Assembly: GCA_002269645.1 (NCBI GenBank)
Contig: NIVC01004236.1
Span: 1-29,899, forward strand
Length of the DNA: 29,899 bases
Reading direction: 5' to 3'
DNA from: Macrostomum lignano
Taxonomy: Eukaryota
Shown here: positions 2,358 through 22,339 of the stretch, piece after piece
Layout of the letters: every line of letters begins with the position of its first letter
Position numbering within the stretch: position 1 is the first letter of the stretch
Program-made: the position numbers and the translations under genes
Notes under the pieces: model-generated
What the model was told of the DNA's origin: nothing
What the model saw: the letters and a program-made list of their open reading frames with translations, nothing else
Databases searched by the model: none

Positions 2358-2502
2358 CTTGAGCTGCTGCTGCTGCTGTTGCGCTGGCTGCTTTCCAGTT
2401 TCTGTTCTGTCCGAGTTGCTGCTCCATTGCAGGCTGACCACCTGCAGTGCTAGACGCGAGCTGGGCGGAGAGTCGCGCTCGAGAATTCGACGAATGCAGG
2501 GT
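2358..2502 (-). CDS. BRCA2: BRCA2 exon linking helical domain to OB1 (absent from ORF track in this frame)
   Basis: (R)PCIRRILERDSPPSSRLALQVVSLQWSSNSDRTETGKQPAQQQQQQLK resembles human [22 protein letters not shown]. 145 nt with phase-2 start and phase-0 end, fitting both neighbouring exons exactly. Confidence 0.9.
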
Positions 2503-2674
2503 CTGGTTGATGGAGGAATAAGCAGTAATATCTTGGTTCATTTTGTTGAGCCGAAATCGAATTTTTATCTTGTTCGAGCAAGACTCTGCTAATTTGTCCC
2601 TAAGTACGAATTGTGCGCTAATAAAATTTTCAGCTTTCAGACAATTATAAAGCACAATAATAAAACTATAATTG

Positions 2675-2965
2675 ATTACACCTGCCCTAAATGGGCAGAT
2701 GTGCAACCAACAGCTCAGCCTCAGATATTGCGCGGCGCATCTGAAGGCTGCGTACGGCTGTTCAGTCCAAGGACCTGGGGGGGGGGTCGCCACACACAGC
2801 CTCAATTACCCCAGCTAATGCTGGCACCCATTTTACAGCTGGGTGAACTGAAGAAACGCAGAGTTTAGTGTCTTGCTAAAGGACACAAATCGTTCCGGTG
2901 AGATCAGGAATCGAACCCCCGACCTTCAAGTCGTGAGTCCGACGCTCCAACCACTGGCTACAGAG
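2675..2965 (-). mobile_element. tRNA-derived CORE-type SINE, copy 1
   Basis: Minus strand: tRNA-like head (GTAGCCAGTGGTTGG...GGTTCGATTCC) then TGTGTCCTTTAGCAAGACACT...CAGTTCACCCAGCTGTAAAATGGGTG, similar to the MIR/CORE motif. Three further copies in the window. Confidence 0.85.
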
Positions 2966-3720
2966 TGCAAGTAATATACAATAAATATATGCCACAGGAG
3001 ACAAAGTGCAACAGAGGTCAGTACATTGTACGTAGAAGTGTGTACGCGAGAGTGTGTTGCATCACCTTGGCAACAAAACTGAGTCTGTAAGATAGAATAG
3101 ACCCCCTCGTACACACGCAGGAGCATTTTTATTGTTCTACCATTTTGCGTCTTATAAGACAAACTCCTCAGCGCAAAATGGTAGCAGAAGAAACACAGTA
3201 GACAGCCACATCTTTGCACACGCAGTAAATCTCTGCAGAGTAGAATGAAAATATTTGAGAACAGATGCATTCAAAGTACGCAACGCGCACCGCCTTTTAA
3301 CAGCTTTCATGTCTCCAGCGCACAGAGCACAGAGCTATTCGAGTCTAACGGGGGTGTCGAGGGGCATAAGAGACGGACTAACAATAGAGCTCAGAGCTTT
3401 CCAGAGCTACTCAACAAGGAGGGCTGGGCTGCAAGTGCGCTTGAGCAGAAGAGCAAGAGAAAGAGATAAAATTCTTAAATCTTCATGCTTTTTCACCTGC
3501 TAACAAAGATAGAAGTTTAGAGTAAAGACTAAAGCCCAATATCTGAGTAGTTGAAATCTGAGCTTAACAGAAGCTGACAGAAAACCTGCAGCTCACAGCT
3601 GAGGATGCCAGAAGTTCGTCGAATGACCTTGGCCGCTCGGCCGAAAAATCAAGTGGTTGTGAGTTACTAACTGTCTAACTGTTGGATACTTTACTAAAAT
3701 GTGCATTTTAACATTGGTTA

Positions 3721-4855
3721 ATGACATCCAAAATTTCAGTTCGGCGTGGTAGACAACACGCCCAAGCTGCAGTTGGACATGACCGACGAGAGGAGCGTAG
3801 AGAACCTATCCAGGTGTGCCACTTTCTCATGCGAGAGGGCAAGGCGTGCTTGAGAAGCCTATTCGATTCCAAGCATCCAACGGACGAGCTAACGGAACAC
3901 TTGGCCTCGCCGGACATTCACCGGACGCTGAGGCGACTTAAGATCAAAGACATGCTAACCGAAGACGACTGGCAGACGCTCTACCCGAAGGAGAAATCTT
4001 CCGTGTCCGCTGACAACTACGACCTGCGTCTGCTGCTCCTGTTAGTAAAATACACCTGCGATGTGACGAAGCCGCAGCCAAACGGCTGGATGGGAGATCC
4101 GGAACCTCGCGATGACAGCCAGGGCGCAGCGCTGCAACGCCTACTGGGCATTCAACGCGAGCTCGCCTCGCTGCAGACCTTAAAGGCGAGCGCAGCTAAC
4201 AGACTGTTTAGCCGCATTGCCGAGCAGCTCCAGCGACTGGGACACTCGGGTGCAGCAGACTGTATGAACGCATACAAGCAGGACACTAGCATGGACGAGA
4301 CTGAATCGCGCTTCATTCTGGGCGAATTCCTCGTCTGGTACCGCCAAGAGGTCAGCCAGTTGAAGAGAGAAATCGAAAACCAAGAACGAAAGAAGAAGCG
4401 CGAAGAGATTCCTATTCTGCAGAAACGGCTCAAGACGCGCGATTTGGACACGTCGGAAACGAAAAAACGCCAGTCGGTTGTTGGAAAGGCGACGATGGAC
4501 ATGAGCGACAAGTCGCGCTGTCAGAGATGGGCTCATATCAAAACTGGCATGGTATTAGCGGAGCGCCTCATTCTCGACAAGTACTACGAACAGCTGCTCA
4601 ACGATGTAAAAGCGGACACAGTGGTTGAGCATCTGATGAACAAGGAGATTATTACCCAAGACGAGAGCACGGAAATATTTTCTACTCTGCGCAACAACGA
4701 GCAGATGTCGACGTTGATCGACTTTCTAGTGCCAAAATCTGGCAATGTGTTGGATGAGTTCGTTGAATCGCTGAAACCCAAGAACGAACAGGTGTACCAG
4801 CAGATGCACCAGGACTACCAGGCCGCTAAGGCCGACATCCTTGCTAATAAACCAC
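3721..4855 (+). CDS. NLR-like gene exon 1: DZIP3/hRUL138-type HEPN-like domain (~3808-4245), coiled coil, CARD-like death fold (~4552-4809)
   Basis: CLRSLFD..DWQTLYP..DNYDLRLLLLLVKYTC..PNGW..P..DDSQGAALQRL fits the invertebrate DZIP3-like HEPN pattern. LILDKYYEQLLNDVKADTVVEHLMNKEIITQDESTEIFS..QMSTLIDFLVPKSGNVLDEFVESL fits the CARD pattern. In-frame TAA just upstream of the ATG; donor C/GTAAG at 4856. Confidence 0.85.
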
Positions 4856-4932
4856 GTAAGTATTTATAATAATTAGTAAATCCTCTTCTAAGAGTTGATC
4901 ACAGGATTTTTCTGTTTCTTCTGTTTCTTCAG

Positions 4933-5074
4933 AGGGTCTGCCTTACTGTAACAACATTCTTCGAGAGCGGTACTCCACCGCGTACGCCAAATGGAATCCG
5001 ATTCCATGGTACACTAAAGTTGAAACAGACATTGCCGAATTCTACTGCCAACAGCAGCTGCTCAATTTGAATGG
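4933..5074 (+). CDS. NLR-like gene exon 2 (pre-NACHT segment)
   Basis: TTCTTCAG acceptor, GG/GTAAGT donor, phases 1 to 2 consistent with neighbours. QGLPYCNNILRERYSTAYAKWNPIPWYTKVETDIAEFYCQQQLL shows the LxxxY..P(I/L)PW pattern common before invertebrate NACHT domains. Confidence 0.85.
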
Positions 5075-5151
5075 GTAAGTAGCAGGAAAACAGATCAGAT
5101 CATTAAGCCAGACATAATTTTCAACTTTGATTTCTCAATTTAAAATTGCAG

Positions 5152-7690
5152 AAAGTCAGTCAACGCCTTCCAAGTTTTTGATTATAAGGAAGGCGAAAAA
5201 GACCCGCATACAGTAGTCATTGAGGGTGACCCCGGAACAGGGAAGAGTACGCTGGCTAAGTATATGGCCTACAAATGGTCTTTGGACGAAAACGTATTCG
5301 GACGGCCTTTCCAACTGCTAATCTTGCTTGATCTTAAAGTGACAGCGCCCACAGTGAAAGTGATGATGATGGAACAGCTTTTCGGAGGCGACTGCAAGCT
5401 GGCCGAACGCGAAATTTGGGAGGTGATGAACATGCACCAGGCGAGCACACTGCTCATCATAGATGGCTACGAAGACAATCTAAATGATGAGATGAAGAGT
5501 TTGCTATTTGAGAACATCATGCCGGAACTGCACATTCTGGTATTTAGTCAGACTAACTTTACAGTCAGACTGATGCACCGCTACCAGCGAAAGGTAATTC
5601 TGACCGGATTCGCCAAATCCCAGGCAGAGGAGTACGTTCAGAAGTACGTCAAACTAGCTAAGAAGCCGTGGGAACACTTTTCCTCGTTTCTAAACAAGCT
5701 AGTAGTGGCAAAAAAATCAACTGAGCTTCAAAAGCTGCTGGATGCAGCGAAAAAGTCGCAGGAGCCGCAGAGGCGACGCGGGTCGTCAGAATCGGCGACA
5801 TCTGTGACCTCGGCAAAGCCCAGAGACGAGCGACCTTTGGAGAGGGAAAACACGGACAAAGTCAGCACAAAACTAAGCCGCAGCTCTAGCAAGGGTCAAG
5901 GAAACGATCAGCAGCAACAACAGGATTCAAACGGTGAAAATTCAAATCAAAGCAAAATAGCGTCCCTGCGACATTACTCACAGGTGCCTTTGTACTGTTC
6001 GTTCTTCTGCCTGCTGACCGACATGCGCATGAGTATCGATCTGAACTCTCCGACAACAATTGTGGAACAGTTTGTCTCCTGCATCAAGTTGAAGCTGATC
6101 GAACGCGAAAAGGAGAGTCGCTTCGAAGCGAATCGCGCCTACGCAATGCTGTCCGAACGCGCTATGGACACCATAAAGAAAGGCAGCGCAACTTTCATTT
6201 TGGCCAAGGAGGACCACATGATGACTAAGTTCGGCCTGATTCAACTGGCTACAAACCTCACCGCAGAGGATAACCAGCGCTACATGTTTGGCAATCGTCT
6301 TATTCAAGAGTATCTCGCCGCGAAAAATCTAGACACTAGTGGAACAGATGAAGCTAGCCGCTTCTTCCAGAACATGAGTATGACTCCGATCTCCTACAAT
6401 GTTGTTGTGTTCTACTGCAGCATCCGCAAGTCGGACAACGACACGCCGGCCACCCGGGAACTGTTTGCAAAGATACTGCAGTATAACAAACGGCGAGGCA
6501 AAGCGAGTCGCATGAAAATGCCAGCGGCTACGTCGCCAGAAGACAGTCAACTGGTCGAGGGCAAGATCATGGACTACCAGCTCAGTCTGGAATGCGTGGC
6601 GGTCATGGACATGGCCCGCAGAGATCTTGGCAAGAAAATTGTTGAATCGCTGCCAGAGCGATTCACCGTGAAGCACGAGGGCATCATTCCGAGATTGTCG
6701 CTTACAGGCCTGTCCAAGATGATCAAGTTTAACCACACGACCATCCAAGAGGTGGACTTGCGCCTAGATCTGCTAGCCAAAGAGACGCTTGAGGCATACA
6801 AAAGTCTGGCTACCGCAATGAAAACGAACGTTCACATCAAGACGCTCCGCATCTACTGGACAGAGAAGGATCTAATGGCAGACTTCCTTCAAACCGTGTG
6901 CTGTCCGGAGCCAGAGGACCCCGCCAATTCTACAGGCCAGATGGAAATCAGGCGTAAGAAGCCCGATCAGACCGGCTTTCATCTGAAGAATCTTGAGTGC
7001 ATCGACGAGTCAGGAAAGAAGCTGGACCAGTTGTCGCCAAAAATGCTAAACAACATGCGCGAAGCCTGCTCGAACATGACTAAACTAGAAACGTTCGCAT
7101 TTCAAAATTGTCACCACATGTCGCTGGTTGGAAGCATAATAAAAAATTTGCCAACTAAATTTGCGGACAACCTGCGCATTCTAGACTTTTCTGGCTGCCA
7201 GATGAGCATAGTGGCATCGCAGGATCTCAACGGAAAGCTGATGGAGAGCAAGAGTCTAGAAGGCCTGATCTTGGCTAACCTCAAGATTGATGCGATGGCC
7301 TTTAACACTTTCATCGCCGCATTCTCTAGCAATCGGACCATTGTCCTGCTGGATTTGAGCGGAATCCGCCTGGACAATGTCTGCTTCTTCTCTCTATCCG
7401 AAGCGCTGAAAATTAATAACAAGCTTGAGAAGCTATTCTTACGCCAGGTGCCAATGGACACGAGAGCTTGCAAAGAGGTGGCTAGAATTCTAAAGATTAA
7501 TAAGATGCTGAAACTTCTCACGGTCACGCAGGAGGTCGTCAGCGAGGAGGGTCGCCGGGTTCTGGGCGAGGAGAGCCAGACGGAGACGCGCAAGAATCGG
7601 GCGGTCGTGGACGGCATCGGGGTGGAGTATCGGCAGAGACCGACGAACGAGAGGGCCAATACTAAGAGAAACCCGCTGTCAGTCAAGTGA
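5152..7690 (+). CDS. NLR-like gene exon 3: NACHT NTPase, winged helix and LRR region; full spliced protein 1271 aa
   Basis: Walker A VVIEGDPGTGKSTLAKYMAYKW (5225-5251), Walker B LLIIDGYED, ILTGF, P-motif YSQVPLYCSFFC, WHD FGNRLIQEYLAA, LRRs LRILDFSGCQM / LEGLILANLKI / IVLLDLSGIRL / LEKLFLRQVPM. Exon lengths 1135+142+2539=3816 nt, uninterrupted. Confidence 0.93.
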
Positions 7691-9149
7691 GGAAACCATG
7701 GCCGATGATGAAGACGCATCCTAACTATTATTATCAAATAACAGTGAATTTCAATAACTTTTTAAAAGTTGTGAATAGTTTTTGTTTAGCACTGCCCTCC
7801 TTCGTTAATACGGCCCACAAGAACTTTGTAACTGTTTGCACAGAACGAGAAATCCTAGAATTTAAGCGATATCTTACTGAGACAAAGATGATTTTTTCTA
7901 AAGTAAAAACTGTACGTAAAACATACAGTATTGTTTTAAGTTTATTTATTCTCTATAATAACATTAAGCTAAATGATACAATATAATTTTCAATTTTTTA
8001 ACAGACAGCTTTGTAACAGACTAACAGGAAAAGTTCTTGTCAATTTTTCTAGAAAAAATATAAACAAGTGAATAATAGTTTTTACACTTGGTTGGTTTTA
8101 AATGAAAATTTAAGACAGTGGGTACTTTAAACAAGATGATGATGAAGCGGCCCCAGTCGCTAAACACAGAATCCCAGCTCCAGTTCCATATAAGACCGAT
8201 CGTCCTTCTCTCTTGCCGTAGAGGGAGAAGATTAATTTGCCTGTCGATAAGAAGCCGAGCGACGAAGTTTGGGGTTGCTATGGGGGAGGGGGGTTAATGA
8301 ATCGAATGGAGGCAAAGTGTCAGACAGTAGTGAGATAGATAGGACCCATTCAATCGCGGCATCGATAGCGCTCACACTTATACTATAAGAACTATATAGA
8401 TTCTATATTCGAAAGTCTTGAGCGCATTGGCAGTTTGATTAAAATGCCCATAGCTATAGAGGTTGAAGCCACCAAACTCGCGCTGTCCCATCTTATCGTT
8501 GGGAGGGGGAGCCATAAATGGGAAAGAAAGAGAGAGAGAGACCAACAGGAGCTAGATCGGATAGAGAGAGAGCGAGTGAGCAATTATAAGAAACTGGGGA
8601 ATGTGAAGTTCCGAATGAGAATAAGGCGGAAATGAATAGGCCAGAGGCAAATGGTGAGGGGTGATATATAGGGATTCTGAGCAGTATAGACTCAAATAGA
8701 ATAGGAATGATAGAGATAGAAGAAAGTAAAATGCGGAGGCACCAAATTCCAGAGCTTCGACCGGTTCGAAGAGTTGATTGGTTGCAAAGAGGCACTGATT
8801 TATATACGAGCGTGTATATAATAATACATAGAAGGGAGAAGACTGCAGGGGCTTGGGATTGAATTTTGTTCGGTTTGCTTTTCAATGGGAGATAATGACA
8901 GTGCATAAGAATGAGGAGGTGGTTGGGAGAGGGCAAGGAGACTCAGAACTTGGACTGACAACTCTTATTCAAGCCTTACATTTTTGGACAACTATAAAAC
9001 TTGATTGTAGCTTAGTGTCTTTTAACTTCTCTTTTATTACTAGGTCGCATTTATATTGCTCAGAATGCAGTTAATTGTGTTTAAGGAACTAGCAATCTGC
9101 GCTCCTTCTGTTGGTGACGCAACAAAGAAAGGAATAACAGTTTTGAGTA

Positions 9150-9445
9150 AACTATATGTAAGTAACTACATGTAAGTTTTTTATGTGCAACCGACAGCTC
9201 AGCCGCAGCTATTTCGCGGCGCATTTGAAGGTTGCGTACGGCTGTTCAGTCCAAGGACTGGGGGTCGCCACACACACAGCCTCAATTACCCCAGCTAATG
9301 CTGGCACCATTTTACAGCTGGGTGAACTGAAGCAATGCAGAGTTAAGTGTCTTGTTTAAGGACAAATTGTTTCAGTGGGATCGGAAATCGAACCCCTGAC
9401 CTTCAAATTGTGAGTCCGACGCTCTAACCACTAGGCTACAACAGC
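9150..9445 (-). mobile_element. tRNA-derived CORE-type SINE, copy 2 (most complete)
   Basis: A box TAGCCTAGTGG (~9438-9428), B box GGTTCGATTTCC (~9394-9383), CORE-like body, short ACTTACAT/GTAGTT repeat tail near 9150-9180. Confidence 0.87.
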
Positions 9446-9769
9446 CGTAGTACAGTCAAGTCAGTATTGCTAATCTCTTCAGGAAAATGATGTTTAAAGG
9501 AAAGCAGCATCAGTCTTGAGAAACAGCTATCTAGCTGAAGATATGAGATTCCCTATGAGTTTTTTTGGCTCAAAACATCTGAGTAACCACCAAGAGCCAC
9601 AGAATTTCAGCAATTCCCCCCAATGAGCCTTGACATCTCAGCATTTCCCACACGAACCTTGGCATGTCCCAATTACCACACTGTCATTTTAAAATGTTTT
9701 CTCTGTGTTTTTGGCATGATTTTCTACACACTTTAGTTCCTTATCTGAACCTTTCTGAATTTAGGGCCA

Positions 9770-9945
9770 CACTTTAGGGCAATGAGAATCACACTTTAGG
9801 GCAATGGGAATACACCAATCACAGAATTTCAAGTGAGAATCACACTTTATAATCACACTTTAGGGCAATGAGAATCACACTTTAGGGCAATGAGAATCAC
9901 ACTTTAGGGCAATGAGAATCATACTTTAGGGCAATGAGAATTACT
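9770..9945. repeat. Short array of 22-bp ATCACACTTTAGGGCAATGAGA, reverse complement of the 14905-18077 satellite
   Basis: About 6 copies, partly interrupted. Confidence 0.92.
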
Positions 9946-10332
9946 TTATACTTAAAAGTTCAAACAAAATGACTCGAAACAGTCAGAAACTCGCAGACTG
10001 GGATAGAGGAAGGTTCTTGTTTTTTGCGTTTTTATTTGTTTACTCAATCCTAGCACGCCAAGTTCTAGCTGTGGGCCTCCTTGACACGAGGAGAAAGGGG
10101 AAGAAAAGGAAAAAAGGAAGGACGAGGTGCGTCAGTCGAAGGTACACACAGTCGAGCACGGGCGAATAAAATCGAAAGCTGGTGTGATAGGCCTTGAGAC
10201 GCAGCCAACAAATGGCCTTTAATATTTTAGCATTGCGGCAGGAAAATCCGCTGTAATCTGACACCGGCAATACAGTTTACAAACGAGAGCTGGCCAGCCC
10301 ACTAAACCAGCTGTCGGATTTCCTCCGCAAAG

Positions 10333-10716
10333 ATGAGCGACAATGAGGAACGAATCTGCCTCGTACCAAAAGACGACGACGAATGGAAGCAGCAAAAGCC
10401 GACGGTGACACAAGGAGACACGATCGATGCTACCATAGTAGAGGAGGCTTCAACTTCTTCATCGACGGCTGCAGTCACTACGGCACTGTCAGCAACAGCA
10501 TCGGCACCATCGGCAGCCTCAAACAGCAGCAGCAGCAACAACAAGCGAAGGAGAAAGCTAAGAAGAGCCGGTACAGTTATTGGTGGAAGCAAGAGATTTT
10601 CGAGCCATGGTGGCGGCGGGAGCGGCAGCGGCGGAGTGGCTGGAGGCAGACGGGTGCTGGCTAAGAAGGCCAGTCTGGTTGCTATCGCATCGTCCAAGAG
10701 GCACACAAGTAAAAAA
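10333..10716 (+). CDS. Atypical G-alpha gene, predicted exon 1 (128-aa low-complexity/basic N-terminal extension)
   Basis: ORF from ATG 10333 ends at strong donor AAA/GTGAGT (10717) in phase 0, matching the phase-0 acceptor at 11867. The linkage is inferred from phase only. Confidence 0.6.
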
Positions 10717-10754
10717 GTGAGTAGATCGGAGGCCACAAGATGTTGCATCAAGCA

Positions 10755-11020
10755 GAGGGGGGGGGGTTGTAGCCTACTGGTTAGGGGATTCGATTCTTGA
10801 CCCACCCAGAACAACTTGTGTCCTTGAGAAAGACACCTCAACTCTGCATTGCTTCAGTTCACCCAGCAGTAAAATGGGTGACAGCATTACCTGGGGTAAT
10901 TGAGGGCTTGTGTGGCGATGGCAACCCCAGATTTTAGACTCAACAGCCGCAAGCAGCCTTCAGATGCGCCACGCAATAGCCAGTTGTACGAGCTACATCT
11001 GCCTATTAAGGCAGGTGTAG
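10755..11020 (+). mobile_element. tRNA-derived CORE-type SINE, copy 3 (more diverged)
   Basis: TTGTGTCCTTGAGAAAGACAC..CAGTTCACCCAGCAGTAAAATGGGTG..TGGGGTAATTGAGG..CAGCCTTCAGATGCGCC matches the reverse complement of copies 1 and 2. Confidence 0.8.
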
Positions 11021-11866
11021 TAAAAAAGCTGTCAGTGAAGATGCTATGATAGTGGAGATGAGATCTCACTGGAGATCAGATATTAGTAGATAACATGAGA
11101 AAGAAATAGAGTTAAGGTGAAGGTAAAGATTATACTTCCGTGAATATAAGAGCTCAGTGGAGATTCAATATCAATAAAGACGAGATTTCATTAGGGATGA
11201 AGGTTGAGATGTCAGTAGGGATAAGTTCTCAATGTCATTTCATCACTGGTAGGTAGCTGTAGCCGACTGTAACTATAAATAATGATCAAATATGAATACA
11301 AGTCAATAAGATTGCAATCAAACAATTCTTTTTCAAAACTATCAATTGCTCGGCCGTATTAATTCCCCTATAGAACATTGGGGCGCCCAATTATGCTGAA
11401 GAAGAGATAAAGAAATTGACTATGAAAAAAAGGATGGGAAACGCGCATATTTTTATTTGCATATAACAACGCTTGTCCCCTAATTGCGATTGAAATTCAA
11501 TTATCCAGTACTAAATTTTCTATTTTGAGTTATGGCACGCATTATAGCTATATTGGATTAGAAGATAAGCAAATATATATTGGAATAAATTCGGCAAGGG
11601 GTGCTTAGGAAAATGAGTAGTGGTTGGGAGTACCAACTAGTTTTCTCCTCTATTCTCCGATTCCAACAATCTATAGTGCGAAATGCCAAATTCAGTGTGT
11701 TAAGGAAATGATGACGGCTCGAGTTACGAGCCAATTTCTGGAGAGGATTTAAAAAGCGCCAAACAGTCCTTCTGCCGTCTCACTCACAGATACCTGGGTA
11801 CACGCAAGAGACACCCGCTGAGGACTTAGAGATCTCTTATTCAACTCGCATCAAAACTTCTTACAG

Positions 11867-11996
11867 ATATCGGATCATTTTAACAGCATCAACAAGCTGG
11901 CTCAGAAGAGGGCTCTGATGCGTTCGAAGCAAATTGACCAGCTGTTGCTGACTGACCAGGAAGCCAAGCGCAAGGAGATTCACCTGCTGCTGATTG
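11867..11996 (+). CDS. G-alpha exon: alphaN helix and beta1
   Basis: ISDHFNSINKLAQKRALMRSKQIDQLLLTDQEAKRKEIHLLLIG resembles the canonical RSKxIDxxL..(K/R)ExKLLLLG. TTACAG acceptor, G/GTTTGT donor. Confidence 0.85.
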
Positions 11997-12082
11997 GTTT
12001 GTTTTTTTACTTTAGTACAACACGACACACGTTAAAACAGTTTCTTTCTTACCAAATAATTCCAAATATCTCGACGTCTTAA

Positions 12083-12710
12083 ATGTGTCTACCACAGCCT
12101 GAAGTGTGTCTACCACAGCCTGAAGTGTGTCTACCACAGCCTGAAGTGTGTCTACCACAGCCTGAAGTGTGTCTACCACAGCCTGAAGTGTGTCTACCAC
12201 AGCCTGAAGTGTGTCTACCACAGCCTGAAGTGTGTCTACTACCATATCCTGAAGTGTGTCTACCACAGCCTGAAGTGTGTCTACCACAGCCTGAAGTGTG
12301 TCTACCACAGCCTGAAGTGTGTCTACCACAGCCTGAAGTGTGTCTACCACAGCCTGAAGTGTGTCTACCACAGCCTGAAGTGTGTCTACCACAGCCTGAA
12401 GTGTGTCTACCATATCCTGAAGTGTGTCTACCACAGCCTGAAGTGTGTCTACCACAGCCTGAAGTGTGTCTACCACAGCCTGAAGTGTGTCTACCATATC
12501 CTGAAGTGTGTCTACCATATCCTGAAGTGTGCCTACCATATCCTGAAGTGTCTACCACAGCCTGAAGTGTGTCTACCACAGCCTGAAGTGTGTCTACCAC
12601 AGCCTGAAGTGTGTCTACCATATCCTGAAGTGTGTCTACCATATCCTGAAGTGTGCCTGCCTGAAGTGTGAAGTGTGTCTACCACAGCCTAAGTGTGTCA
12701 AGTGTGTCTA
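12083..12710. repeat. 21-bp minisatellite GTGTGTCTACCACAGCCTGAA in G-alpha intron
   Basis: About 28 copies; source of the PQPEVCL and LQAVVDT artefact ORFs. Confidence 0.97.
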
Positions 12711-13026
12711 AAAGTGTTACTCAGTCTAAAGTGCCCTTTTGAGAGTTCGGAACGTGTCTCACGGCATCTGTAGTGCGTCTCTCGACAGGCTAAAATGTGT
12801 ATACAGTCTATAAGTGTGTCTATCAATAAAAGAGTGTCTCACTATTAAGTTTAAGTTTATGCTGAAGTTTAATTTAAGTTTAATTTTATGAAATTAAAAC
12901 GACAGTATTCATTCATATTATCCGTTATATAGCGCTATTCCTTTAGATTTTTTAACTGCCAAGTTTTTTTCAACCAAAACGTATATTAACGTTTAATCCA
13001 GATTTCACTTTTTGACATTAACTTAG

Positions 13027-13211
13027 GCGGCAACGGATGCGGCAAGAGTACGTTAGTGAAACAGTTTCGAATTCACTACGGAGACGCATTCCCGGACGAG
13101 CAACGCAAGGCGCTGATCGGTCAGGTGCTGGAGAATCTAGCAGATGCGGTGCACATTGTGCTGGAGAATATGCGCACTAGGGACATCTGGTTTCACGATC
13201 CCTACATCAAG
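13027..13211 (+). CDS. G-alpha exon: P-loop and helix alphaA
   Basis: GGNGCGKSTLVKQFRIHYGDAFPDEQRKALIGQVLENLADAVHIVLENM resembles GAGESGKSTFIKQMRIIH..F...E....V.QN...AM..M. Phase-1 acceptor, AAG/GTAGGA donor. Confidence 0.92.
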
Positions 13212-13565
13212 GTAGGAAGGTAGCGGTTTTTTATTCTACATCAAAGTTTGATTGCAGCTGTTGTTGGTCAAAGGGACTTTTTCGAAATTCTAGAAATTAT
13301 CTATCAGAGGACTTGGGCCAGAAGGCTTTCGCTCGATTCCAGGCGTAGCTACATCAAATTTGAATCCACATATTGGGATATTTTTGCTCGACCCATGGCA
13401 GACAAAGTCGGGGCTGCAGTGCATCTTTAGTGCGCCCCTCATGTCTCTGTACTTGTGTAGCTTTGGCTTTAGGGAACCGCAAAAATTCAAGGGCTCACTT
13501 TCTCAGTGCCAGGGTTTTGGAGTTGGTTCTCTTGAACAAGCCCCAGGCAAATATTCATACACCAG

Positions 13566-13975
13566 ACCCGAATTCTGTGGCCCCGCATGGAATGCAACTC
13601 ACACGGAGATGTAAGACCATTGTTAATCGCGCACCCAACCAGGACATGGTTGAAGAATTCCAAGCCTACTGTCCGAAATTCAACAGTCAAATATTTCGCC
13701 ACTCCGGCAAACAAGTGGACATTGAGAACAGCATTCACTACGCGCACGTTGATTTTGTGGACGACGATACGCTGGCATCGGCGCCGACTGACACCGACCT
13801 GCCTAGCAGTTGCGGTCACGACAACGCGCACGAACTACTGTTATTCGATGTTAGCTACCGAGAGGCCAGGCGAAACAACTTAGACTTGAACGGACTTGAC
13901 GGACTGGCTTCGGGTGGGGACGGCAACGGAGGCGACACGGCGTCAGCTTCGTTAATAATCTATTATAATACGCAG
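13566..13975 (+). CDS. G-alpha exon within the helical-domain insertion (5' boundary unresolved: 13507 or 13566; a small exon ~13308-13344 probably precedes it)
   Basis: Open frame ..QDMVEEFQAYCPKFNSQIFRHSGKQVDIENSIHYAHVDFVDDD..YNTQ ending at CAG/GTGAGA in phase 0, matching the acceptor at 14388. Confidence 0.55.
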
Positions 13976-14227
13976 GTGAGAAAGACGCGTCTCACCGGAT
14001 GAGTCTATTTGGAGCATCGTATTAAATAGATAAAGAATAAGAAGTCCACGAGGATTATAAAAAACCAGTTATTTTCTTCTTATCATGTTTTCTTCTACAT
14101 GTAAAATGAAGTCATTATACAAGCGCACATTAAGATCTTAGTACATTTTGGTCCTCATAAATGTGAATTAATGTAACTATAAGGTCATTTCAAGCATGTG
14201 AATGCACATTTTTGTCCTTGTTTAGCG

Positions 14228-14355
14228 CGGCCCGGCGCCTCTAAAGGCTGCGTACGGCTGTTCAGTCCAAGGACTGGCACCCATTTTACAGCTGGGTGAA
14301 CTGCAGCAATGCAGAGTAAAGTGTCTTGCTCAAGGACACAAATTTGAACTCAAGG
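14228..14355 (-). mobile_element. CORE-type SINE, copy 4 (truncated, internally deleted)
   Basis: AAGGCTGCGTACGGCTGTTCAGTCCAAGGACTGG is fused directly to CACCCATTTTACAGCTGGGTGAACTG...GTGTCTTGCTCAAGGACACAA. Confidence 0.85.
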
Positions 14356-14387
14356 TCCTTTCTATCCGATATATAAAAACACCGCAG

Positions 14388-14797
14388 GGCCTCGAGGACA
14401 GCCAGTCCGAAGCGGACGACCGAGACCGTGAGCGAGAGACGCACACGGCCAGGACCTACATTAGCAGTCTGGAATTTGGCAAATTCTCCAGACGTCAAAG
14501 ACGCCAACAACTGCAAAACCTGAGCGGAGAGGATGCCGGACTGAACCAGCTGGACGATGGCAGCTCCGACAGCAGCTGCGCCAGGCTGGTTGAGCACCTT
14601 CACCTAGGCGACGCGCACGACACCGACTCCTCGGGAGGTCGGCGCGCCTCGTCAACCCTGGACGGCTTGCCGCCTCACGACGAAATCGTGTTCTGCTTCG
14701 TGCGACACATAAAGAACTGCATTGTGCAGCCGGAGTTCGAATTGTGCCTCGCTGATCACGAGTACTTCAAGCCGGAGATTACCTACGCCGAGATGTA
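14388..14797 (+). CDS. G-alpha exon: end of insertion, helices alphaC-alphaE (not in ORF track)
   Basis: GLEDSQSEADD...PPHDEIVFCFVRHIKNCIVQPEFELCLADHEYFKPEITYAEM. Ends TA/GTGAGT, completing Tyr with the C at 18196; 410 nt = 136 codons + 2. Confidence 0.75.
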
Positions 14798-14904
14798 GTG
14801 AGTTACTTCGTTTGTTTTTAGAGGGTCTGACAGACAGTCTAGCTGTCCTCTTGATTGTTAATCTGTTTTTTTATATTCAATAGTGACTAGTTCAGTAGGG
14901 CAGC

Positions 14905-17900
14905 GATTCTCATTGCCCTAAAGTGTGATTCTCATTGCCCTAAAGTGTGATTCTCATTGCCCTAAAGTGTGATTCTCATTGCCCTAAAGTGTGATTCTCA
15001 TTGCCCTAAAGTGTGATTCTCATTGCCATAAAGTGTGATTCTCATTGCCCTAAAGTGTGATTCTCATTGTCATAAAGTGTGATTCTCATTGCCCTAAAGT
15101 GTGATTCTCATTGCCCTAAAGTGTGATTCTCATTGTCATAAAGTGTGATTCTCATTGCCCTAAAGTGTGATTCTCATTGTCATAAAGTGTGATTCTCATT
15201 GCCCTAAAGTGTGATTCTCATTGCCCTAAAGGGTGATTCTCATTGCCCTAAAGTGTGATTCTCATTGCCCTAAAGTGTGATTCTCATTGCCCTAAAGTGT
15301 GATTCTCATTGCCCTAAAGTGTGATTCTCATTGCCATAAAGTGTGATTCTCATTGCCCTAAAGTGTGATTCTCATTGCCCTAAAGTGTGATTCTCATTGC
15401 CATAAAGTGTGATTCTCATTGCCCTAAAGTGTGATTCTCATTGCCCTAAAGTGTGATTCTCATTGCCCTAAAGTGTGATTCTCATTGTCATAAAGTGTGA
15501 TTCTCATTGCCCTAAAGTGTGATTCTCATTGCCCTAAAGTGTGATTCTCATTGCCATAAAGTGTGATTCTCATTGCCATAAAGTGTGATTCTCATTGCCC
15601 TAAAGTGTGATTCTCATTGCCCTAAAGTGTGATTCTCATTGCCCTAAAGTGTGATTCTCATTGCCCTAAAGTGTCATTCTCATTGCCCTAAAGTGTGATT
15701 CTCATTGCCCTAAAGTGTGATTCTCATTGCCCTAAAGTGTGATTCTCATTGCCCTAAAGTGTGATTCTCATTGCCCTAAAGTGTGATTCTCATTGCCCTA
15801 AAGTGTGATTCTCATTGCCCTAAAGTGTCATTCTCATTGCCCTAAAGTGTCATTCTCATTGCCCTAAAGTGTCATTCTCATTGCCCTAAAGTGTGATTCT
15901 CATTGCCCTAAAGTGTGATTCTCATTGCCCTAAAGTGTGATTCTCATTGCCCTAAAGTGTCATTCTCATTGCCCTAAAGTGTCATTCTCATTGCCCTAAA
16001 GTGTGATTCTCATTGCCCTAAAGTGTGATTCTCATTGCCATAAAGTGTGATTCTCATTGCCCTAAAGTGTGATTCTCATTGCCCTAAAGTGTGATTCTCA
16101 TTGCCCTAAAGTGTCATTCTCATTGCCCTAAAGTGTCATTCTCATTGCCCTAAAGTGTGATTCTCATTGCCCTAAAGTGTGATTCTCATTGCCCTAAAGT
16201 GTCATTCTCATTGCCCTAAAGTGTCATTCTCATTGCCCTAAAGTGTCATTCTCATTGCCCTAAAGTGTCATTCTCATTGCCCTGAAGTGTGATTCTCATT
16301 GCCCTAAAGTGTGATTCTCATTGCCATAAAGTGTGATTCTCATTGCCCTAAAGTGTGATTCTCATTGCCCTAAAGTGTCATTCTCATTGCCCTAAAGTGT
16401 GATTCTCATTGCCCTAAAGTGTGATTCTCATTGCCCTAAAGTGTGATTCTCATTGCCCTAAAGTGTGATTCTCATTGCCATAAAGTGTGATTCTCATTGC
16501 CCTAAAGTGTGATTCTCATTGCCCTAAAGTGTGATTCTCATTGCCCTAAAGTGTGATTCTCATTGCCCTAAAGTGTGATTATCATTGCCCTAAAGGGTGA
16601 TTCTCATTGCCCTAAAGTGTGATTCTCATTGTCATAAAGTGTGATTCTCATTGCCCTAAAGTGTGATTCTCATTGTCATAAAGTGTGATTCTCATTGCCC
16701 TAAAGTGTGATTCTCATTGCCCTAAAGGGTGATTCTCATTGCCCTAAAGTGTCATTCTCATTGCCCTAAAGTGTCATTCTCATTGCCCTAAAGTGTGATT
16801 CTCATTGCCCTAAAGTGTCATTCTCATTGCCCTAAAGTGTGATTCTCATTGCCCTAAAGTGTCATTCTCATTGCCCTAAAGTGTCATTCTCATTGCCCTA
16901 AAGTGTGATTCTCATTGCCCTAAAGTGTGATTCTCATTGCCATAAAGTGTGATTCTCATTGCCCTAAAGTGTGATTCTCATTGCCCTAAAGTGTGATTCT
17001 CATTGCCCTAAAGTGTCATTCTCATTGCCCTAAAGTGTCATTCTCATTGCCCTAAAGTGTCATTCTCATTGCCCTAAAGTGTGATTCTCATTGCCCTAAA
17101 GTGTCATTCTCATTGCCCTAAAGTGTGATTCTCATTGCCCTAAAGTGTCATTCTCATTGCCCTAAAGTGTCATTCTCATTGCCCTGAAGTGTGATTCTCA
17201 TTGCCCTAAAGTGTGATTCTCATTGCCCTAAAGTGTGATTCTCATTGCCATAAAGTGTGATTCTCATTGCCCTAAAGTGTGATTCTCATTGCCATAAAGT
17301 GTGATTCTCATTGCCCTAAAGTGTGATTCTCATTGCCCTAAAGTGTGATTCTCATTGTCATAAAGTGTGATTCTCATTGCCATAAAGTGTGATTCTCATT
17401 GCCCTAAAGTGTGATTCTCATTGCCCTAAAGTGTGATTCTCATTGCCCTAAAGTGTGATTCTCATTGCCCTAAAGTGTGATTATCATTGCCCTAAAGGGT
17501 GATTCTCATTGCCCTAAAGTGTGATTCTCATTGTCATAAAGTGTGATTCTCATTGCCCTAAAGTGTGATTCTCATTGCCCTAAAGGGTGATTCTCATTGC
17601 CCTAAAGTGTGATTCTCATTGTCATAAAGTGTGATTCTCATTGCCCTAAAGTGTGATTCTCATTGCCCTAAAGGGTGATTCTCATTGCCATAAAATGTAA
17701 TTCTCATTGTCATAAAGTGTGATTCTCATTGCCCTAAAGTGTGATTCTCATTGCCCTAAAGTGTGATTCTCATTGTCATAAAGTGTGATTCTCATTGCCC
17801 TAAAGTGTGATTCTCATTGTCATAAAGTGTGATTCTCATTGCCCTAAAGTGTGATTCTCATTGCCCTAAAGGGTGATTCTCATTGCCCTAAAGTGTGATT

Positions 17901-18077
17901 CTCATTGTCATAAAGTGTGATTCTCATTGCCCTAAAGTGTGATTCTCATTGCCCTAAAGGGTGATTCTCATTGCCATAAAATGTAATTCTCATTGTCATA
18001 AAGTGTGATTCTCATTGCCCTAAAGTGTGATTCTCATTGCCCTAAAGTGTGATTCTCATTGCCCTAAAGGGTGATTC
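14905..18077. repeat. 22-bp satellite GATTCTCATTGCCCTAAAGTGT, ~144 copies (3.2 kb) in G-alpha intron
   Basis: Direct reading; highly homogeneous with a few diagnostic variants. Confidence 0.99.
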
Positions 18078-18195
18078 AACATCAGTCTGATTACAGTTTT
18101 CAAGTTAGCGACAATTTTAACTTAAAACACTAAAAACTTACTAAAATGTTTAAGGCTCTGTAAAATAAAGATCACCAATCTAAATAAATCTACAG

Positions 18196-18324
18196 CTTTA
18201 TACAACACGTGGATCGCGTCATTCAAGAGGACTATGTGCCAACGCTGCAAGATATTTTGGCCATTCGCAAGCCGAGCGACGCAGTCAGACAGACCGAATT
18301 TCAAATTGCTGGCACCACTTTTCG
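18196..18324 (+). CDS. G-alpha exon: alphaE-alphaF, switch I
   Basis: YFIQHVDRVIQEDYVPTLQDILAIRKPSDAVRQTEFQIAGTTFR resembles [41 protein letters not shown] donor. Confidence 0.92.
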
Positions 18325-18349
18325 GTGAGCTTAAAGCGGATGCAGAATG

Positions 18350-19130
18350 TTCTGTGTCTACTTTCCTGTCGCTTCTGTGTCCACCTCTTTGTACTCGCTT
18401 TGTCCACCTCCCTGTCGCTGTAGTGTCCATTTACTGGTCGCTGCTGTGTCCACCTCGTTGCATCCGCTGTGTCCACCTTCCTGTCACTGTTGTGTCCACC
18501 TCTTTGCATCCGCTGTGTCCACCTCTCTGTCGCTGTTATGTCCATCTTCCTGTCGCTGTTATGTCCATCTTCCTGTCACTGTTGTGTCCATCTTCCTGTC
18601 ACTGTTGTGTCCATCTTCCTGTCGCTGTGTGTGTCCACCTTTCTGTCGCTGTTATGTCAATCTTCCTGTCGCTGTTATGTCCATCTTCCTGTCACTGTTG
18701 TGTCCATCTTCCTGTCACTGTTGTGTCCATCTTCCTGTCACTGTTGTGTCCATCTTCCTGTCGCTGTGTGTGTCCACCTTTCTGTCGCTGTTATGTCAAT
18801 CTTCCTGTCGCTGTTATGTCCATCTTCCTGTCACTGTTGTGTCCATCTTCCTGTCACTGTTGTGTCCATCTTCCTGTCACTGTTGTGTCCATCTTCCTGT
18901 CACTGTTGTGTTCATCTTCCTGTCGCTGTGTGTTTCTACCTCTCTGTCGCTGTTATGTCCATCTTCCTGTCGCTGTGTGTGTCCAGCTCTCTGTCGCTGT
19001 GTGTGTCCAGCTCTCTGTCGCTGTGTGTGTCCAGCTCTCTGTCGCTGTGTGTGTCCAGCTCTCTGTCGCTGTTGTGTCCATTTCCCGGTCGCTGTTGAGT
19101 CCACCTTTTTGCATCCGCTGTGTCCACCTC
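18350..19130. repeat. CT-rich ~23-bp degenerate minisatellite (CCTGTCACTGTTGTGTCCATCTT-like)
   Basis: Many variant copies; source of Cys/Leu-rich artefact ORFs. Confidence 0.93.
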
Positions 19131-19216
19131 CCAGCCTCCAATGTGTCTGTTTCCCTAAATTCCCTAAATTCAACTCCCTAAAATGTTTTGTGTCCACCTC
19201 CTTGAATCTGAATCAT

Positions 19217-19478
19217 CTGTGTACACCCCTGTCTATCTGTGTACACCCCTGTCTATCTGTGTACACCCCCTATCTGTGTACACCCCCTATCTGTGTACAC
19301 CCCTGTCTATCTGTGTACACCCCCTGTCTATCTGTGTACATCCCTGTCTATCTGTGTACACCCCCTGTCTATCTGTGTACACCCCCTGTCTATCTGTGTA
19401 CACCCCTGTCTATCTGTGTACACCTCCTGTCTATCTGTGTACACCCCTATCTGTGCGCACCCCCTGTCTATCTGTGTC
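19217..19478. repeat. ~20-21-bp repeat TATCTGTGTACACCCCCTGTC
   Basis: About 13 copies, each with a GTGTACAC palindrome. Confidence 0.93.
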
Positions 19479-19576
19479 CGACCTCCTTGGCTTTTTCATC
19501 ACATCTGGATATCATCAGCCAAGTCAATCAATTTATCTGCAATAAAAATCCGCCCAATTTTCATTCAAAACGACAG

Positions 19577-19706
19577 CATGATCGATCTGGCAGGCCAGAG
19601 AAGCCAGCGGCACAAGTGGATTCACTATTTCGAAGACGTCAACGCAGTGCTATTCGTCAGCTCTCTGTCTGGCTTCGGCGAGCTTGTCGAAGAGGAGGAC
19701 AGAACG
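19577..19706 (+). CDS. G-alpha exon: switch II
   Basis: RMIDLAGQRSQRHKWIHYFEDVNAVLFVSSLSGFGELVEEEDRT resembles [34 protein letters not shown]. Confidence 0.95.
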
Positions 19707-19789
19707 GTGAGAAACCACGCACGTCTTTCTAAATCATTAATCATCATAAATCATGTCATAAACAGACAATCCATCCGTACATTCTCCAG

Positions 19790-19945
19790 ACAATTAAAAT
19801 GTCCGACTGTCTATCAACATTCAGCGAGATCATCAGCAACAAGTACTGTGGAAGAAGGATTTCTTTCTGTTCTTAAACAAATTGGACGTGTTCGAGCAGA
19901 AGTTGAAGTCCAAGAGTATTACAGGACTGTTTCCGGACTATCGAG
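19790..19945 (+). CDS. G-alpha exon: alpha3 and NKxD motif (one -1 shift near 19847-19851)
   Basis: KMSDCLSTFSEIISNKY, then after the shift WKKDFFLFLNKLDVFEQKLKSKSITGLFPDYRG, resembling NRM.ESL.LF.SI.NN.WF....ILFLNKKDLFEEK.......FPEYxG. Confidence 0.88.
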
Positions 19946-19961
19946 GTGAGATTTTTCAGAG

Positions 19962-20480
19962 AAATCGCCCCTGGTTATCCAAGCAAATCACCCTGATTAT
20001 CCATCAAAATCGCCCTGATTATCCATCAAAATCGCCCTGATTATCCATCAAAATCGCCCTGATTATCCAAGCAAATCGCCTTGATTAACCAGGAAAATCG
20101 ACCTGATTATCCATCAAAATCGCCCCGATTATCCATCAAAATCGCCCTCATTATCCATCAAAATCGCCCTGATTATCCATCAAAATCGCCCTCATTATCC
20201 ATCAAAATCGCCCTGATTATCCATCAAAATCGCCCTGATTATCCAAGAAAATCGCCCTAATTATCAAGAAAATCGCCCTGGCTATCGAAGAAAATCGCCC
20301 TGATTATCCAAGAAAATCGCCCTGATTTTCCAACGAAATCTCCCACATTATCCAACGAAATCGCCATTTTTTTCTTGAAAATCGCTCCGATTATCCAAGA
20401 AAATTACCCTGATTATTCAAGAAAATCACCCTGATTATCCAAGAAAATTGCCCTGATTATCTGAAAAAATCGCCCCTAAT
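19962..20480. repeat. 22-bp minisatellite AAATCGCCCTGATTATCCATCA and variants
   Basis: About 22 copies filling the last G-alpha intron. Confidence 0.93.
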
Positions 20481-20549
20481 ATAGATAACAACGAACAAAC
20501 AGAATCGAGACATCAAGTTTGATCCTCCTCAATCGTCCTCAATCTCCAG

Positions 20550-20749
20550 GCCACGACGAGGTGAACCAGTGCGCGCAGTACATCAAGGAGAAGTTCACCA
20601 GCCTCATACCGAAGAACATGCCAAAGTCCAAGAGAATCTACACGCACCTCATCACGGCCATAGACATTGACAGCATGAAGCCCCTGTTCAAAGAAGTGCT
20701 GCATCGAATCGCTGAGGCGAACTTGAAGAAGAGCATCACGATTTTTTAG
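20550..20749 (+). CDS. G-alpha terminal exon (alpha4, beta6, alpha5)
   Basis: GHDEVNQCAQYIKEKFTSL..KRIYTHLITAIDIDSMKPLFKEVLHRIAEANLKKSITIF* resembles ..YI..KF..L..K.IY.HFTCATDT.N++.VF..V.D.I...NLK. Confidence 0.93.
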
Positions 20750-20900
20750 TCTAGCTTGCAAATTCTATGAACTAAACAGTCAAATTACTAACTTATGTAC
20801 TTTTGTCACCAAAGGGATCAAACAGGCTTATTATACGCAACAGTACCTTGCACCTTGCAAATCAAATTGTTGCGACTTTGTATAAATGTAACTAAACACT

Positions 20901-20906
20901 AATAAA
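20901..20906 (+). terminator. Candidate polyadenylation signal for the G-alpha gene
   Basis: AATAAA about 150 nt after the TAG. Confidence 0.45.
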
Positions 20907-20917
20907 TACATAGATAC

Positions 20918-21810
20918 TGACACAAACAAACAATCGATTGACACAAACCATTACTCTTAATAACACAAATCATTACTCTACTGACACAAATCAATACTTT
21001 ACTGACATAAATCATTACTTTACTGACACAAATCATTACTTTACTGACACAAATCATTACTTTACTGACATAAATCATTACTTTACTGACATAAATCATT
21101 ACTTTACTGACAAAAATCAATACTTTACTGACAAAAATCATTACTTTACTGACACAAATCATTACTTTACTGACACAAATCAATACTTTACTGACATAAA
21201 TCATTACTTTACTGACAAAAATCAATACTTTACTGACACAAATCATTACTTTACTGACACAAATCAATACTTTACTGACATAAATCATTACTTTACTGAC
21301 ACAAATCATTACTTTACTGACACAAATCAATACTTTACTGACATAAATCATTACTTTACTGACAAAAATCATTACTTTACTGACACAAATCATTACTTTA
21401 CTGACACAAATCAATACTTTACTGACATAAATCATTACTTTACTGACACAAATCATTACTTTACTGACACAAATCATTACTTTACTGACACAAATCATTA
21501 CTTTACTAACACAAATCATAAACCTACTGACACAAATCATTAATTTACTGACACAAATCATTACTTTACTGACACAAATCATTACTTTACTAACACAAAT
21601 CATAAACCTACTGACACAAATCATTAATTTACTGACACAATTCATAAACCTACTGACACAAATCATTAATTTACTGACACAATTCATAAACCTACTGACA
21701 CAAACCATTACTCTACTGACACAAATCATTACTCTACTGACACAAATCATTACTTTACTGACATAAATCATTAATGTACTGACACAAGTTATTAATCTAC
21801 TGACACAAAT
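20918..21810. repeat. 21-bp AT-rich minisatellite ACACAAATCATTACTTTACTG
   Basis: About 40 copies; source of the VSKVMIC and TDTNHYF artefact ORFs. Confidence 0.97.
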
Positions 21811-21893
21811 TTTAAATCTGCTCGCACAATATAAGAAGAGGTCAATCCCACATAAGCAAGACAACAACAGTATCCACTAGTTAAAGCACTCAC

Positions 21894-22337: not shown

Positions 22338-22339
22338 CT

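Follow-up and report, generated by a model that had tools for sequence, protein, structure and literature searches.

A 19.4-kb intron in the DNA-binding domain of Macrostomum lignano BRCA2 and the two antisense coding genes that it appears to host

Can two protein-coding genes lie in antisense within a single intron of BRCA2, and how would such an arrangement have arisen? The question is raised by a stretch of 29,899 nucleotides from the flatworm Macrostomum lignano (contig NIVC01004236.1 of assembly GCA_002269645.1; the whole stretch is hereafter the window). The minus strand of the window, read right to left, is a BRCA2 gene that is interrupted within its DNA-binding domain. Our results indicate that this is very probably the M. 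lignano BRCA2 orthologue, and that an ancient intron of the DNA-binding domain, grown to 19.4 kb, hosts two independent antisense coding genes, one for an NLR-like protein and one for an extra-large G-protein alpha subunit (G-alpha).

Pfam searches identified four BRC stretches (PF00634, BRCA2 repeat; E = 1.2e-31) at window positions 24225-22816, the C-terminal part of the BRCA-2_helical domain (PF09169; E = 2.4e-12) in the open stretch 22315-21896 and the BRCA-2_OB1 domain (PF09103; E = 1.8e-21) in the open stretch 1513-1186. BRC repeats bind RAD51, and the helical domain and OB1 are parts of the DNA/DSS1-binding domain. The helical-then-OB1 order is collinear with BRCA2 of barnacle, annelid, oyster and amphioxus. 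Between these two domains lies BRCA2 intron 4 (2503..21893, minus strand, 19,391 nt), a phase-2 intron with GT at 21893-21892 and AG at 2504-2503 that falls within an Arg codon. The helical-domain exon ends at 21894 as ...GGACACCG/GTGAGT (the slash marks the exon boundary), its last bases being CG, and the next exon starts at 2502 behind its acceptor as ...TCAACCAG/A. CG plus A gives Arg, the joined frame is ...LRYRYDREFVLGHR-PCIRRILERDSPPSSRLALQVVSL..., and the in-frame product across 21894/2502 reads ...YRYDREFVLGHR/PCIRRILERD.... The barnacle BRCA2 (...YRYDRELDGCQRPALRRITEADD...) is collinear and uninterrupted over the junction stretch, and because it reads straight through, no exon has been overlooked between the two.

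The joined BRCA2 peptide, used as a query, retrieved an M. lignano protein at 99% identity. The exact junction is present in the GenBank protein PAA86838.1 (P0006; BOX15_Mlig029441g1, 1354 aa), in which it reads ...YRYDREFVLGHRPCIRRILERDSPP..., with ...GHRPCIRRILERD... as the junction peptide. This protein is annotated on NIVC01000262.1 (L002), one of two further M. lignano contigs of the Mlig_3_7 assembly that were compared with the window, the other being NIVC01000870.1 (L001). The Mlig_3_7 annotation was made from RNA sequencing (RNA-seq) and transcripts only (StringTie/TACO, a mapped de novo transcriptome and TransDecoder; PMC5730564). Because it was built solely from RNA-seq, the annotated coding sequence amounts to transcript evidence that the large intron is spliced out and that the NLR-like gene is expressed. 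Introns of M. lignano are mostly short, with a mean of 1.1-1.4 kb (PMC5730564). A preliminary description of the window had taken the interval for a single intron within the BRCA2 DNA-binding domain, and the coordinates and phase that it gave proved exact. A BRCA2 split in two, its 3' part being trans-spliced, was considered as well and rejected; no in-frame start precedes the OB1 exon, and the annotated full-length coding sequence spans both halves.

BRCA2 relatives were collected by a whole-library HMMER search, and their loci were compared at the Arg codon just before S/P-A/C-L/I-K/R-K/R. An intron was found at this codon in the oyster Saccostrea (phase 2, ~450 bp), in Haliotis, in Patella (~0.9 kb), in amphioxus (under 0.8 kb) and in the annelid Owenia fusiformis (AG/GTAAGT...TAG/G, 11 kb), while the barnacle, Ptychodera and GCA_000485595.2 (which we take to be Priapulus) have none there, the region being a single exon. 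The human exon 17/18 junction presumably lies ten codons upstream, at Arg2659. The phase-2 intron at the same Arg codon is thus common to amphioxus, three molluscs, Owenia and Macrostomum, and sequence comparison indicates that it predates the protostome-deuterostome split and is much enlarged in Macrostomum. The interval had been described earlier as a large insertion into an essential repair gene. This view has to be given up: the intron is not an insertion, because amphioxus, oyster, Haliotis, Patella and Owenia have it at the same position and phase, and that of Owenia holds an antisense NLR of the same type.

The spans of the two nested genes make up 75% of the intron. The first, on the plus strand at 3605..7690, encodes an NLR-like STAND NTPase of HEPN_DZIP3-CARD-NACHT-LRR-like architecture, where LRR stands for leucine-rich repeat. 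Its exons are 3605-3658 (by analogy with the L001 model), 3740/3721-4855, 4933-5074 and 5152-7690, with a possible extra 3' mini-exon from 7790. Two long plus-strand open reading frames (ORFs), 3721-4869 and 5264-7690, gave Pfam matches to HEPN_DZIP3, CARD and NACHT, and between them lie a mini-exon of 142 nt and the beginning of the NACHT exon, every boundary being GT-AG. The spliced model of 1271 aa matches HEPN_DZIP3 (E = 2.5e-17), CARD (6.3e-9) and NACHT (4.6e-15), the last being PF05729 covered over profile positions 1-165 of 167, with GDPGTGKST as the Walker A motif. No LRR was matched by Pfam in this model at E<=0.01; by eye, residues ~1050-1230 show an RNI-like LRR periodicity, and they align with the Owenia protein, whose own LRR match is faint. 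The predicted protein is 99.4% identical to that of the annotated 1292-aa gene of L001, for which our hand model gives 1300 aa, one boundary being different, and over the last exon it matches the gene annotated in L002 (1013 aa) at 100%. The NLR-like gene is expressed, as it was called by the RNA-seq-based annotation on two contigs. Its coding sequence of 3.8 kb contains one one-base indel (~3813), which shifts the N-terminus, and its start lies ~1.1 kb from BRCA2 exon 5, pointing in the opposite direction.

The second guest is a divergent G-alpha of 694 aa (10333..20749, plus strand) encoded by nine exons: 10333-10716, 11867-11996, 13027-13211, 13616-13975, 14388-14797, 18196-18324, 19577-19754, 19837-19945 and 20550-20749. 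A tblastn search with GNAI1 gave six exon-sized matches at 11.9-20.7 kb, and the model built by hand from the sequence has GT-AG at every boundary, consistent phases and an uninterrupted frame. It matches PF00503 in two stretches (E = 5.6e-72, 243 bits vs. a cut-off of 48.8). The unusual size of the protein comes with an N-terminal extension of ~150 aa and ~230 extra residues within the helical domain (exons 4-5). The G-box motifs read from the model are kept in a deviant but plausible form, namely GGNGCGKS (GxxxxGKS), AIRKPS with the switch-I Arg, DLAGQ with the catalytic Gln retained and the first Gly changed to Ala, NKLD, and TAID, in which the Ala is retained. An N-terminal MG/MGC lipidation motif is absent from the model, which begins MSDNEERICL... 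at a start codon picked by ORF alone. When the concatenated exons were used in a homology search, a single match was obtained, 24% identical, with no M. lignano protein and no second locus. All nine exons are present in L002 at 99.1-100% nucleotide identity; over 2085 nt the two copies differ by 7 substitutions, 5 of them synonymous and 2 not, and the introns are 0.7-5% divergent. The gene ends ~1.1 kb from BRCA2 exon 4, and the NLR-like gene lies 2.5 kb upstream of it on the same strand. An acceptor-like ...TTTCCTCCGCAAAG stands immediately 5' of the G-alpha ATG. One may speculate that G-alpha is the downstream gene of a polycistron that is shared with the NLR-like gene and resolved by spliced-leader addition.

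Both guest coding sequences (3605-7690 and 10333-20749) lie wholly inside the intron 2503-21893 and share no exon with the host, and the same holds in L002. In the RNA-seq-derived annotation, BRCA2 is spliced across the interval and the NLR-like gene is a separate gene on the opposite strand. Pfam matches and splice models bear out the two opposite-strand genes that had been announced, an NLR type and an extra-large G-alpha; as for their having been called complete, this applies to the coding sequences only. In the mechanism that we propose, RNA polymerase would transcribe BRCA2 through the whole interval, both guests included, and the spliceosome would join 21894 to 2502 and remove the intron as one unit, a splice that is shown at the level of annotation. 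The NLR-like gene would have a promoter of its own ~1.1 kb from BRCA2 exon 5, and G-alpha, whose expression is presumed, would form a transcription unit that is either independent or coupled to the NLR-like gene. The latter would probably have been in the intron of an early spiralian ancestor already, since Owenia has it too.

This is an ordinary case of genes nested in a host, and no regulatory coupling between them is demonstrated. PMC3192792, in which the general surveys of Yu et al. (2005) and Assis et al. (2008) are cited, gives 373 nested genes in human, ~63% of them antisense, and quotes another study for a lack of correlation in expression, positive or negative, among 109 human and 752 fly host/guest pairs; a figure given in PMC3786989 puts ~6% of Drosophila genes within introns. 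The arrangement had been thought to imply transcriptional interference or mutually exclusive expression. Such a consequence is not supported: antisense nesting is common, nothing at this locus points to interference, and BRCA2 and the NLR-like gene both appear in the same annotation built from RNA-seq. A full-text search found no paper combining "BRCA2 intron" with "nested gene", in agreement with the supposed lack of an earlier report. The specific case is unreported, but nested genes are very well known, and the nesting of an NLR in BRCA2 is already visible in the public annotations of M. lignano and Owenia.

How old is the association of the NLR-like gene with BRCA2? The Owenia BRCA2 (CAH1778041.1; GCA_903813345.2) was compared on CAIIXF020000002.1:30175924-30258992 (L004). 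Within its homologous intron (L004 52532-63527), a gene for a 1146-aa protein is called in antisense at 53257-60894, with Pfam matches to HEPN_DZIP3, CARD, NACHT and, faintly, LRR. The flatworm and Owenia proteins are collinear over nearly the whole length, including regions outside the domains, with an identity of 24-31%: 31% over 177 aa in HEPN, 28% over 162 aa in NACHT and 24% over 554 aa in the post-NACHT/LRR half (E = 5e-42). Both genes have a mini-exon of 47-48 aa (...YS..Y.K..PI.W...FYCQ...L...G), followed by one large exon that runs from NACHT to the end and starts ~22 residues before the P-loop, and the NLR is turned the same way in the two species, with its 5' end towards the downstream BRCA2 exon. 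No nested NLR or G-alpha was found in BRCA2 of oyster, Haliotis, Patella, amphioxus, Ptychodera, barnacle or GCA_000485595.2, and the G-alpha guest was seen only in Macrostomum.

Judged from these sequences, there is about an even chance that a single HEPN_DZIP3-CARD-NACHT gene has been lying antisense in this BRCA2 intron since before the annelid-flatworm split (>500 million years) and was lost in molluscs. A chance match of intron, strand, polarity, three-domain architecture and internal structure is unlikely. The best surviving alternative, to which we assign a probability somewhat below one half, is that the Owenia and Macrostomum genes arrived independently, as convergent insertions from a mobile, expanding family, the shared position being a coincidence. 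HEPN_DZIP3-NACHT genes have indeed expanded and rearranged on a large scale, lineage by lineage, in lophotrochozoans and cnidarians, with 0 to 218 NACHT genes per genome (PMC9646362, PMC8260672); three molluscs keep the intron without a nested gene, and four other unrelated genes in introns of Owenia BRCA2 suggest that insertions are readily accepted. Convergence would, however, have to account for the same intron, antisense orientation and polarity in both species, for the less common N-terminal combination of HEPN_DZIP3, CARD and NACHT, for a full-length collinear alignment (C-terminal half, E = 5e-42) and for the common 47-48-aa mini-exon and NACHT exon start. NLRs moreover seem to be rare in flatworms, which lowers the chance of a random insertion (PMC9646362); the NACHT gene count of Schistosoma is given as 0 in the same source.

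Two further observations were made on the Owenia locus and its NLR. The Owenia BRCA2 gene (83 kb; L004 47165-80021) hosts five called intronic genes, the NLR included: a seven-transmembrane G protein-coupled receptor (+), the HEPN_DZIP3-CARD-NACHT gene (-), a sulfotransferase (-), a 671-aa protein without Pfam match (-) and a RING/B-box/NHL protein (-). The catalytic Rx4-6H motif of HEPN appears by eye to be degenerate in the flatworm NLR (..IQRELASL.., residues ~150-175, window 3721-4300) and likewise in that of Owenia (..IQAYLGSV.., L004 60500-60400). In the pearl oyster, 194 of 202 such HEPN domains retain the motif (PMC9646362). As far as the two sequences tell, the degenerate motif may be a shared derived loss of ribonuclease activity.

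Several observations weigh against a BRCA2 orthologue with two working guests, and they concern the G-alpha, the state of the host gene and the assembly. G-alpha has no annotated protein in either public M. lignano annotation, and exon 8 of its L002 copy carries one surplus base, by which the frame would be disrupted. The eight one-base BRCA2 indels found against L002 would, if real, make the window copy a pseudogene. L001 diverges completely past the 3' end of the NLR-like gene, with a sharp break at window 7812/7813, ~120 nt past the NLR stop, and L002 carries a tandem duplication without counterpart in the window. Finally, the junction is supported by the public annotation of a paralogous or allelic contig and not of the window itself.

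The points on the G-alpha can be read to mean that the NLR-like gene is the only working nested gene and that G-alpha is an unexpressed or dying relic. In addition to the missing protein, to a best match of 24% and to the one-base insertion in exon 8 of the L002 copy, no gene was called at its position in L002 despite the RNA-seq-based annotation, its G-boxes are off consensus (GGNGCGKS, DLAGQ, TAID) and it is without the MG(C) lipidation motif. We nevertheless regard a relic as rather unlikely, since the window presents nine open exons with canonical splice sites, the Pfam score is 243 bits against a cut-off of 48.8, and the catalytic Arg and Gln, Walker A and NKxD are retained. Five of the seven substitutions between the copies are synonymous and the exons are less diverged than the introns, and the L002 indel could be an assembly error, as elsewhere.

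The indels in the host were examined exon by exon. BRCA2 exon 1 (26070..26234, minus strand, as are all BRCA2 exons; start codon at 26234) corresponds to P0006 residues 1-55 and L002 10001-10165 (tblastn, blastn), with two one-base indels vs. L002. The low-complexity exon 2 (24156..24362; L002 11034-11216, blastn) is 24 nt longer than in L002 through an in-frame repeat indel, and exon 3 with its four BRC repeats (22665..24024; L002 11348-12709) has one-base deletions at ~22847 and ~22678. Exon 4, the C-terminal part of the helical domain (21894..22279; ATEKGLG...YRYDREFVLGH+CG; Pfam), is 98.4% identical in amino acids to P0006 residues 569-697. The helical-OB1 linker in exon 5 (2358..2502; A+PCIRRILERDSPPSSRLALQVVSL...QQQLK) shows one substitution vs. 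L002. The OB1 fold in exon 6 (1056..1513; VTLTDGWYCIGAQLD...; Pfam) is identical in amino acids to P0002 and P0006 except for the frameshift caused by a one-base deletion at ~1187. Exon 7 (205..585) has three one-base G/C deletions at ~495, ~418 and ~242, a fourth at ~187 lying just past its end. Further 3' exons are beyond the window start; as regards the OB2, tower and OB3 domains, the precomputed Pfam list of the full-length P0006 consists of BRCA2, helical and OB1 only.

In total, the BRCA2 exons of the window show 20 substitutions against L002, seven deletions and one insertion of one base each, and a repeat whose length differs by 24 nt, in frame. One-base indel sites in the window are 26160, 26100, 22847, 22678, 1187, 495, 418, 242 and 187, with ~3813 in the NLR-like gene; relative to the Mlig_3_7 contigs, almost all are a missing G or C, and the BRCA2 frame is broken repeatedly. 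This would suit a decaying paralogue in a recently duplicated genome, whose nested genes would then sit in a dead host, and M. lignano does have extra copies of much of its genome. Such decay is improbable, though, because neutral change would yield many more substitutions than indels, whereas exons 5-7 have five deletions, all of G or C, and one substitution. The pieces between the shifts are 100% identical to annotated proteins once translated (M. lignano PAA75636.1 is identical in amino acids to the 3' exons of the window, frameshifts aside), and the far less GC-rich NLR-like gene shows one indel in 3.8 kb of coding sequence. The BRCA2 frameshifts look like consensus errors in GC-rich runs, typical of an unpolished long-read consensus, and not like gene decay.

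As to the assembly, L002 is collinear with the window over its full length, at 99.2-99.5% identity over 1-9751 and 95-97% over 9942-25047, where the lower values are mostly due to minisatellites and unique intron sequence differs by ~1%. The BRCA2 gene of L002 spans 34 kb, with the CARD-NACHT gene called within it on the opposite strand. L001 matches the window over 1723-7812 at 98.3% and over 607-2169 at 94.4%, with the same layout of the NLR-like gene and the BRCA2 3' part. In L002, the equivalent of window 569-5014 (BRCA2 exons 5-6 and the 5' part of the NLR-like gene) is present twice within 31590-41957, and the second NLR fragment contains stop codons. The break in L001 implies that the locus is structurally polymorphic among copies; its L001-specific side is probably an insertion or a copy-specific rearrangement. 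The break had initially been considered a sign of misassembly, an idea that was dropped once L002 proved collinear. Because 180 Mb of the M. lignano assembly lie in duplicated blocks at least 95% identical, with extra copies of much of the genome (PMC5730564), near-identical copies of the locus are present. A chimera of two loci, by which BRCA2 would not be truly interrupted, draws on the L001 match that ends at 7812 with unrelated sequence beyond, on the fall of L002 identity from ~99.5% to 95-97% close to a tandem repeat at 9.8-9.9 kb and on the redundancy of the assembly, and it is extremely improbable, given that NIVC01000262.1 is collinear over both intron ends, the interior and all nine G-alpha exons, that an RNA-seq-derived coding sequence uses the junction, that an annelid shares the intron and the same kind of nested gene, and that unique sequence is only ~1% off L002. 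A misassembly joining two loci had been named as what would refute the arrangement; the collinear independent contig and the GenBank coding sequence with the exact junction speak against one, and misassembly is effectively excluded, but the locus is structurally variable.

With regard to the copies, past the break L001 1-3500 is unrelated sequence with a PHD-finger ORF and a cysteine-protease-like motif, and the 3' mini-exon of the annotated L001 NLR crosses the breakpoint. The L002 duplication is either real or an assembly artefact, and the host intron there measures 20.6 or 26.5 kb accordingly. A search with the BRC exon had as its sole match UniProt A0A1I8FL73 (P0005) of the older ML2 annotation, in which an upstream gene is fused to BRCA2 exons 1-3 (window 24022-29000, minus strand) and part of the BRC exon is read out of frame; the name "Rab-GAP TBC domain-containing protein" thus belongs to a chimeric, mis-named model.

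The remaining content of the intron is largely repetitive. Tandem Repeats Finder assigned 32% of the BRCA2 intron to seven tandem arrays. The largest is a 22-bp minisatellite of ~144 copies within G-alpha intron 5 (14905..18077), and a 21-bp minisatellite (20939..21810) takes up the greater part of the 1.1 kb that separates the G-alpha stop from BRCA2 exon 4. The 22-bp satellite (3.2 kb) has a short inverted copy at 9851-9941, and an additional repeat search of the window gave nothing beyond this satellite. Short dispersed repeats resembling short interspersed nuclear elements or miniature inverted-repeat transposable elements occur on both strands (window 2611-2868, 9176-9356, ~10800-10900 and 14183-14330), their copies being visible as similar pseudo-ORFs (...GCVRLFSPRTG...LQLGEL...). 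A different minisatellite family of 28-31 bp (GGGATCTGGGAG..CCCAGCAACTG) fills several BRCA2 introns on either side of the large one and recurs downstream of BRCA2 (window 607-1041, 22385-22633, 24382-25887 and 27801-28625; L001 10225-11320 and 20344-21427); the arrays inside the large intron are different ones. Rfam and transfer RNA scans of the window found nothing. GC content at third codon positions shows no compositional break between host and nested genes, hence no sign of foreign origin.

As first stated, the finding matters little: antisense nesting is routine in animals, the intron is ancestral and the layout can be read from public annotations. Its added value lies in a possible deep conservation of the BRCA2-NLR association, in an expressed NLR-like gene documented in a flatworm, a phylum in which surveys report none, and in the unannotated divergent extra-large G-alpha. 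If the two NLRs are orthologous, this would be a rare deep positional conservation of an immune-receptor-like gene, an unusually stable and probably single-copy NLR orthologue within a family of rapid birth and death, and a test case for linkage preserved by nesting or for co-regulation. One would then ask whether regulation is shared between a gene for DNA repair and a sensor of innate immunity or cell death. The highly divergent 694-aa G-alpha occurs in a regeneration model with transgenesis tools, so its expression and function are directly testable.

Comparable arrangements are known for each part of this locus. In intron 27b of human NF1, the genes OMG, EVI2A and EVI2B lie on the opposite strand. 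The M. lignano locus resembles such pairs in having complete antisense coding genes, more than one per intron of a large gene, and, at the level of annotation, a host that is spliced normally; it differs in its host, BRCA2, in its guests, an NLR-like gene and a G-alpha, in the species, a flatworm with mostly short introns, and in being known from sequence and annotation. Extra-large G-alphas include mammalian XL-alpha-s (GNAS) and plant XLGs. As in these, a G-alpha core carries a long N-terminal extension and the protein is about twice the usual size, but here ~230 residues also lie inside the helical domain and the best database G-alpha is 24% identical, and we claim no relationship. With the HEPN_DZIP3-NACHT families the flatworm NLR shares an N-terminal DZIP3-type HEPN, a NACHT and putative C-terminal repeats. 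Those families form large, clustered arrays of fast turnover, whereas the flatworm gene stands alone within a repair gene, contains a CARD in addition and belongs to a phylum for which the cited surveys of these families give no NACHT genes. The closest counterpart is the BRCA2 locus of Owenia. Its intron is 11 kb long and has no G-alpha, and the two NLRs are putative orthologues by alignment; the two loci are alike in the intron itself (Arg codon, phase 2), in the antisense orientation and polarity of the guest, in the domain architecture of the NLR and in the positions of its introns.

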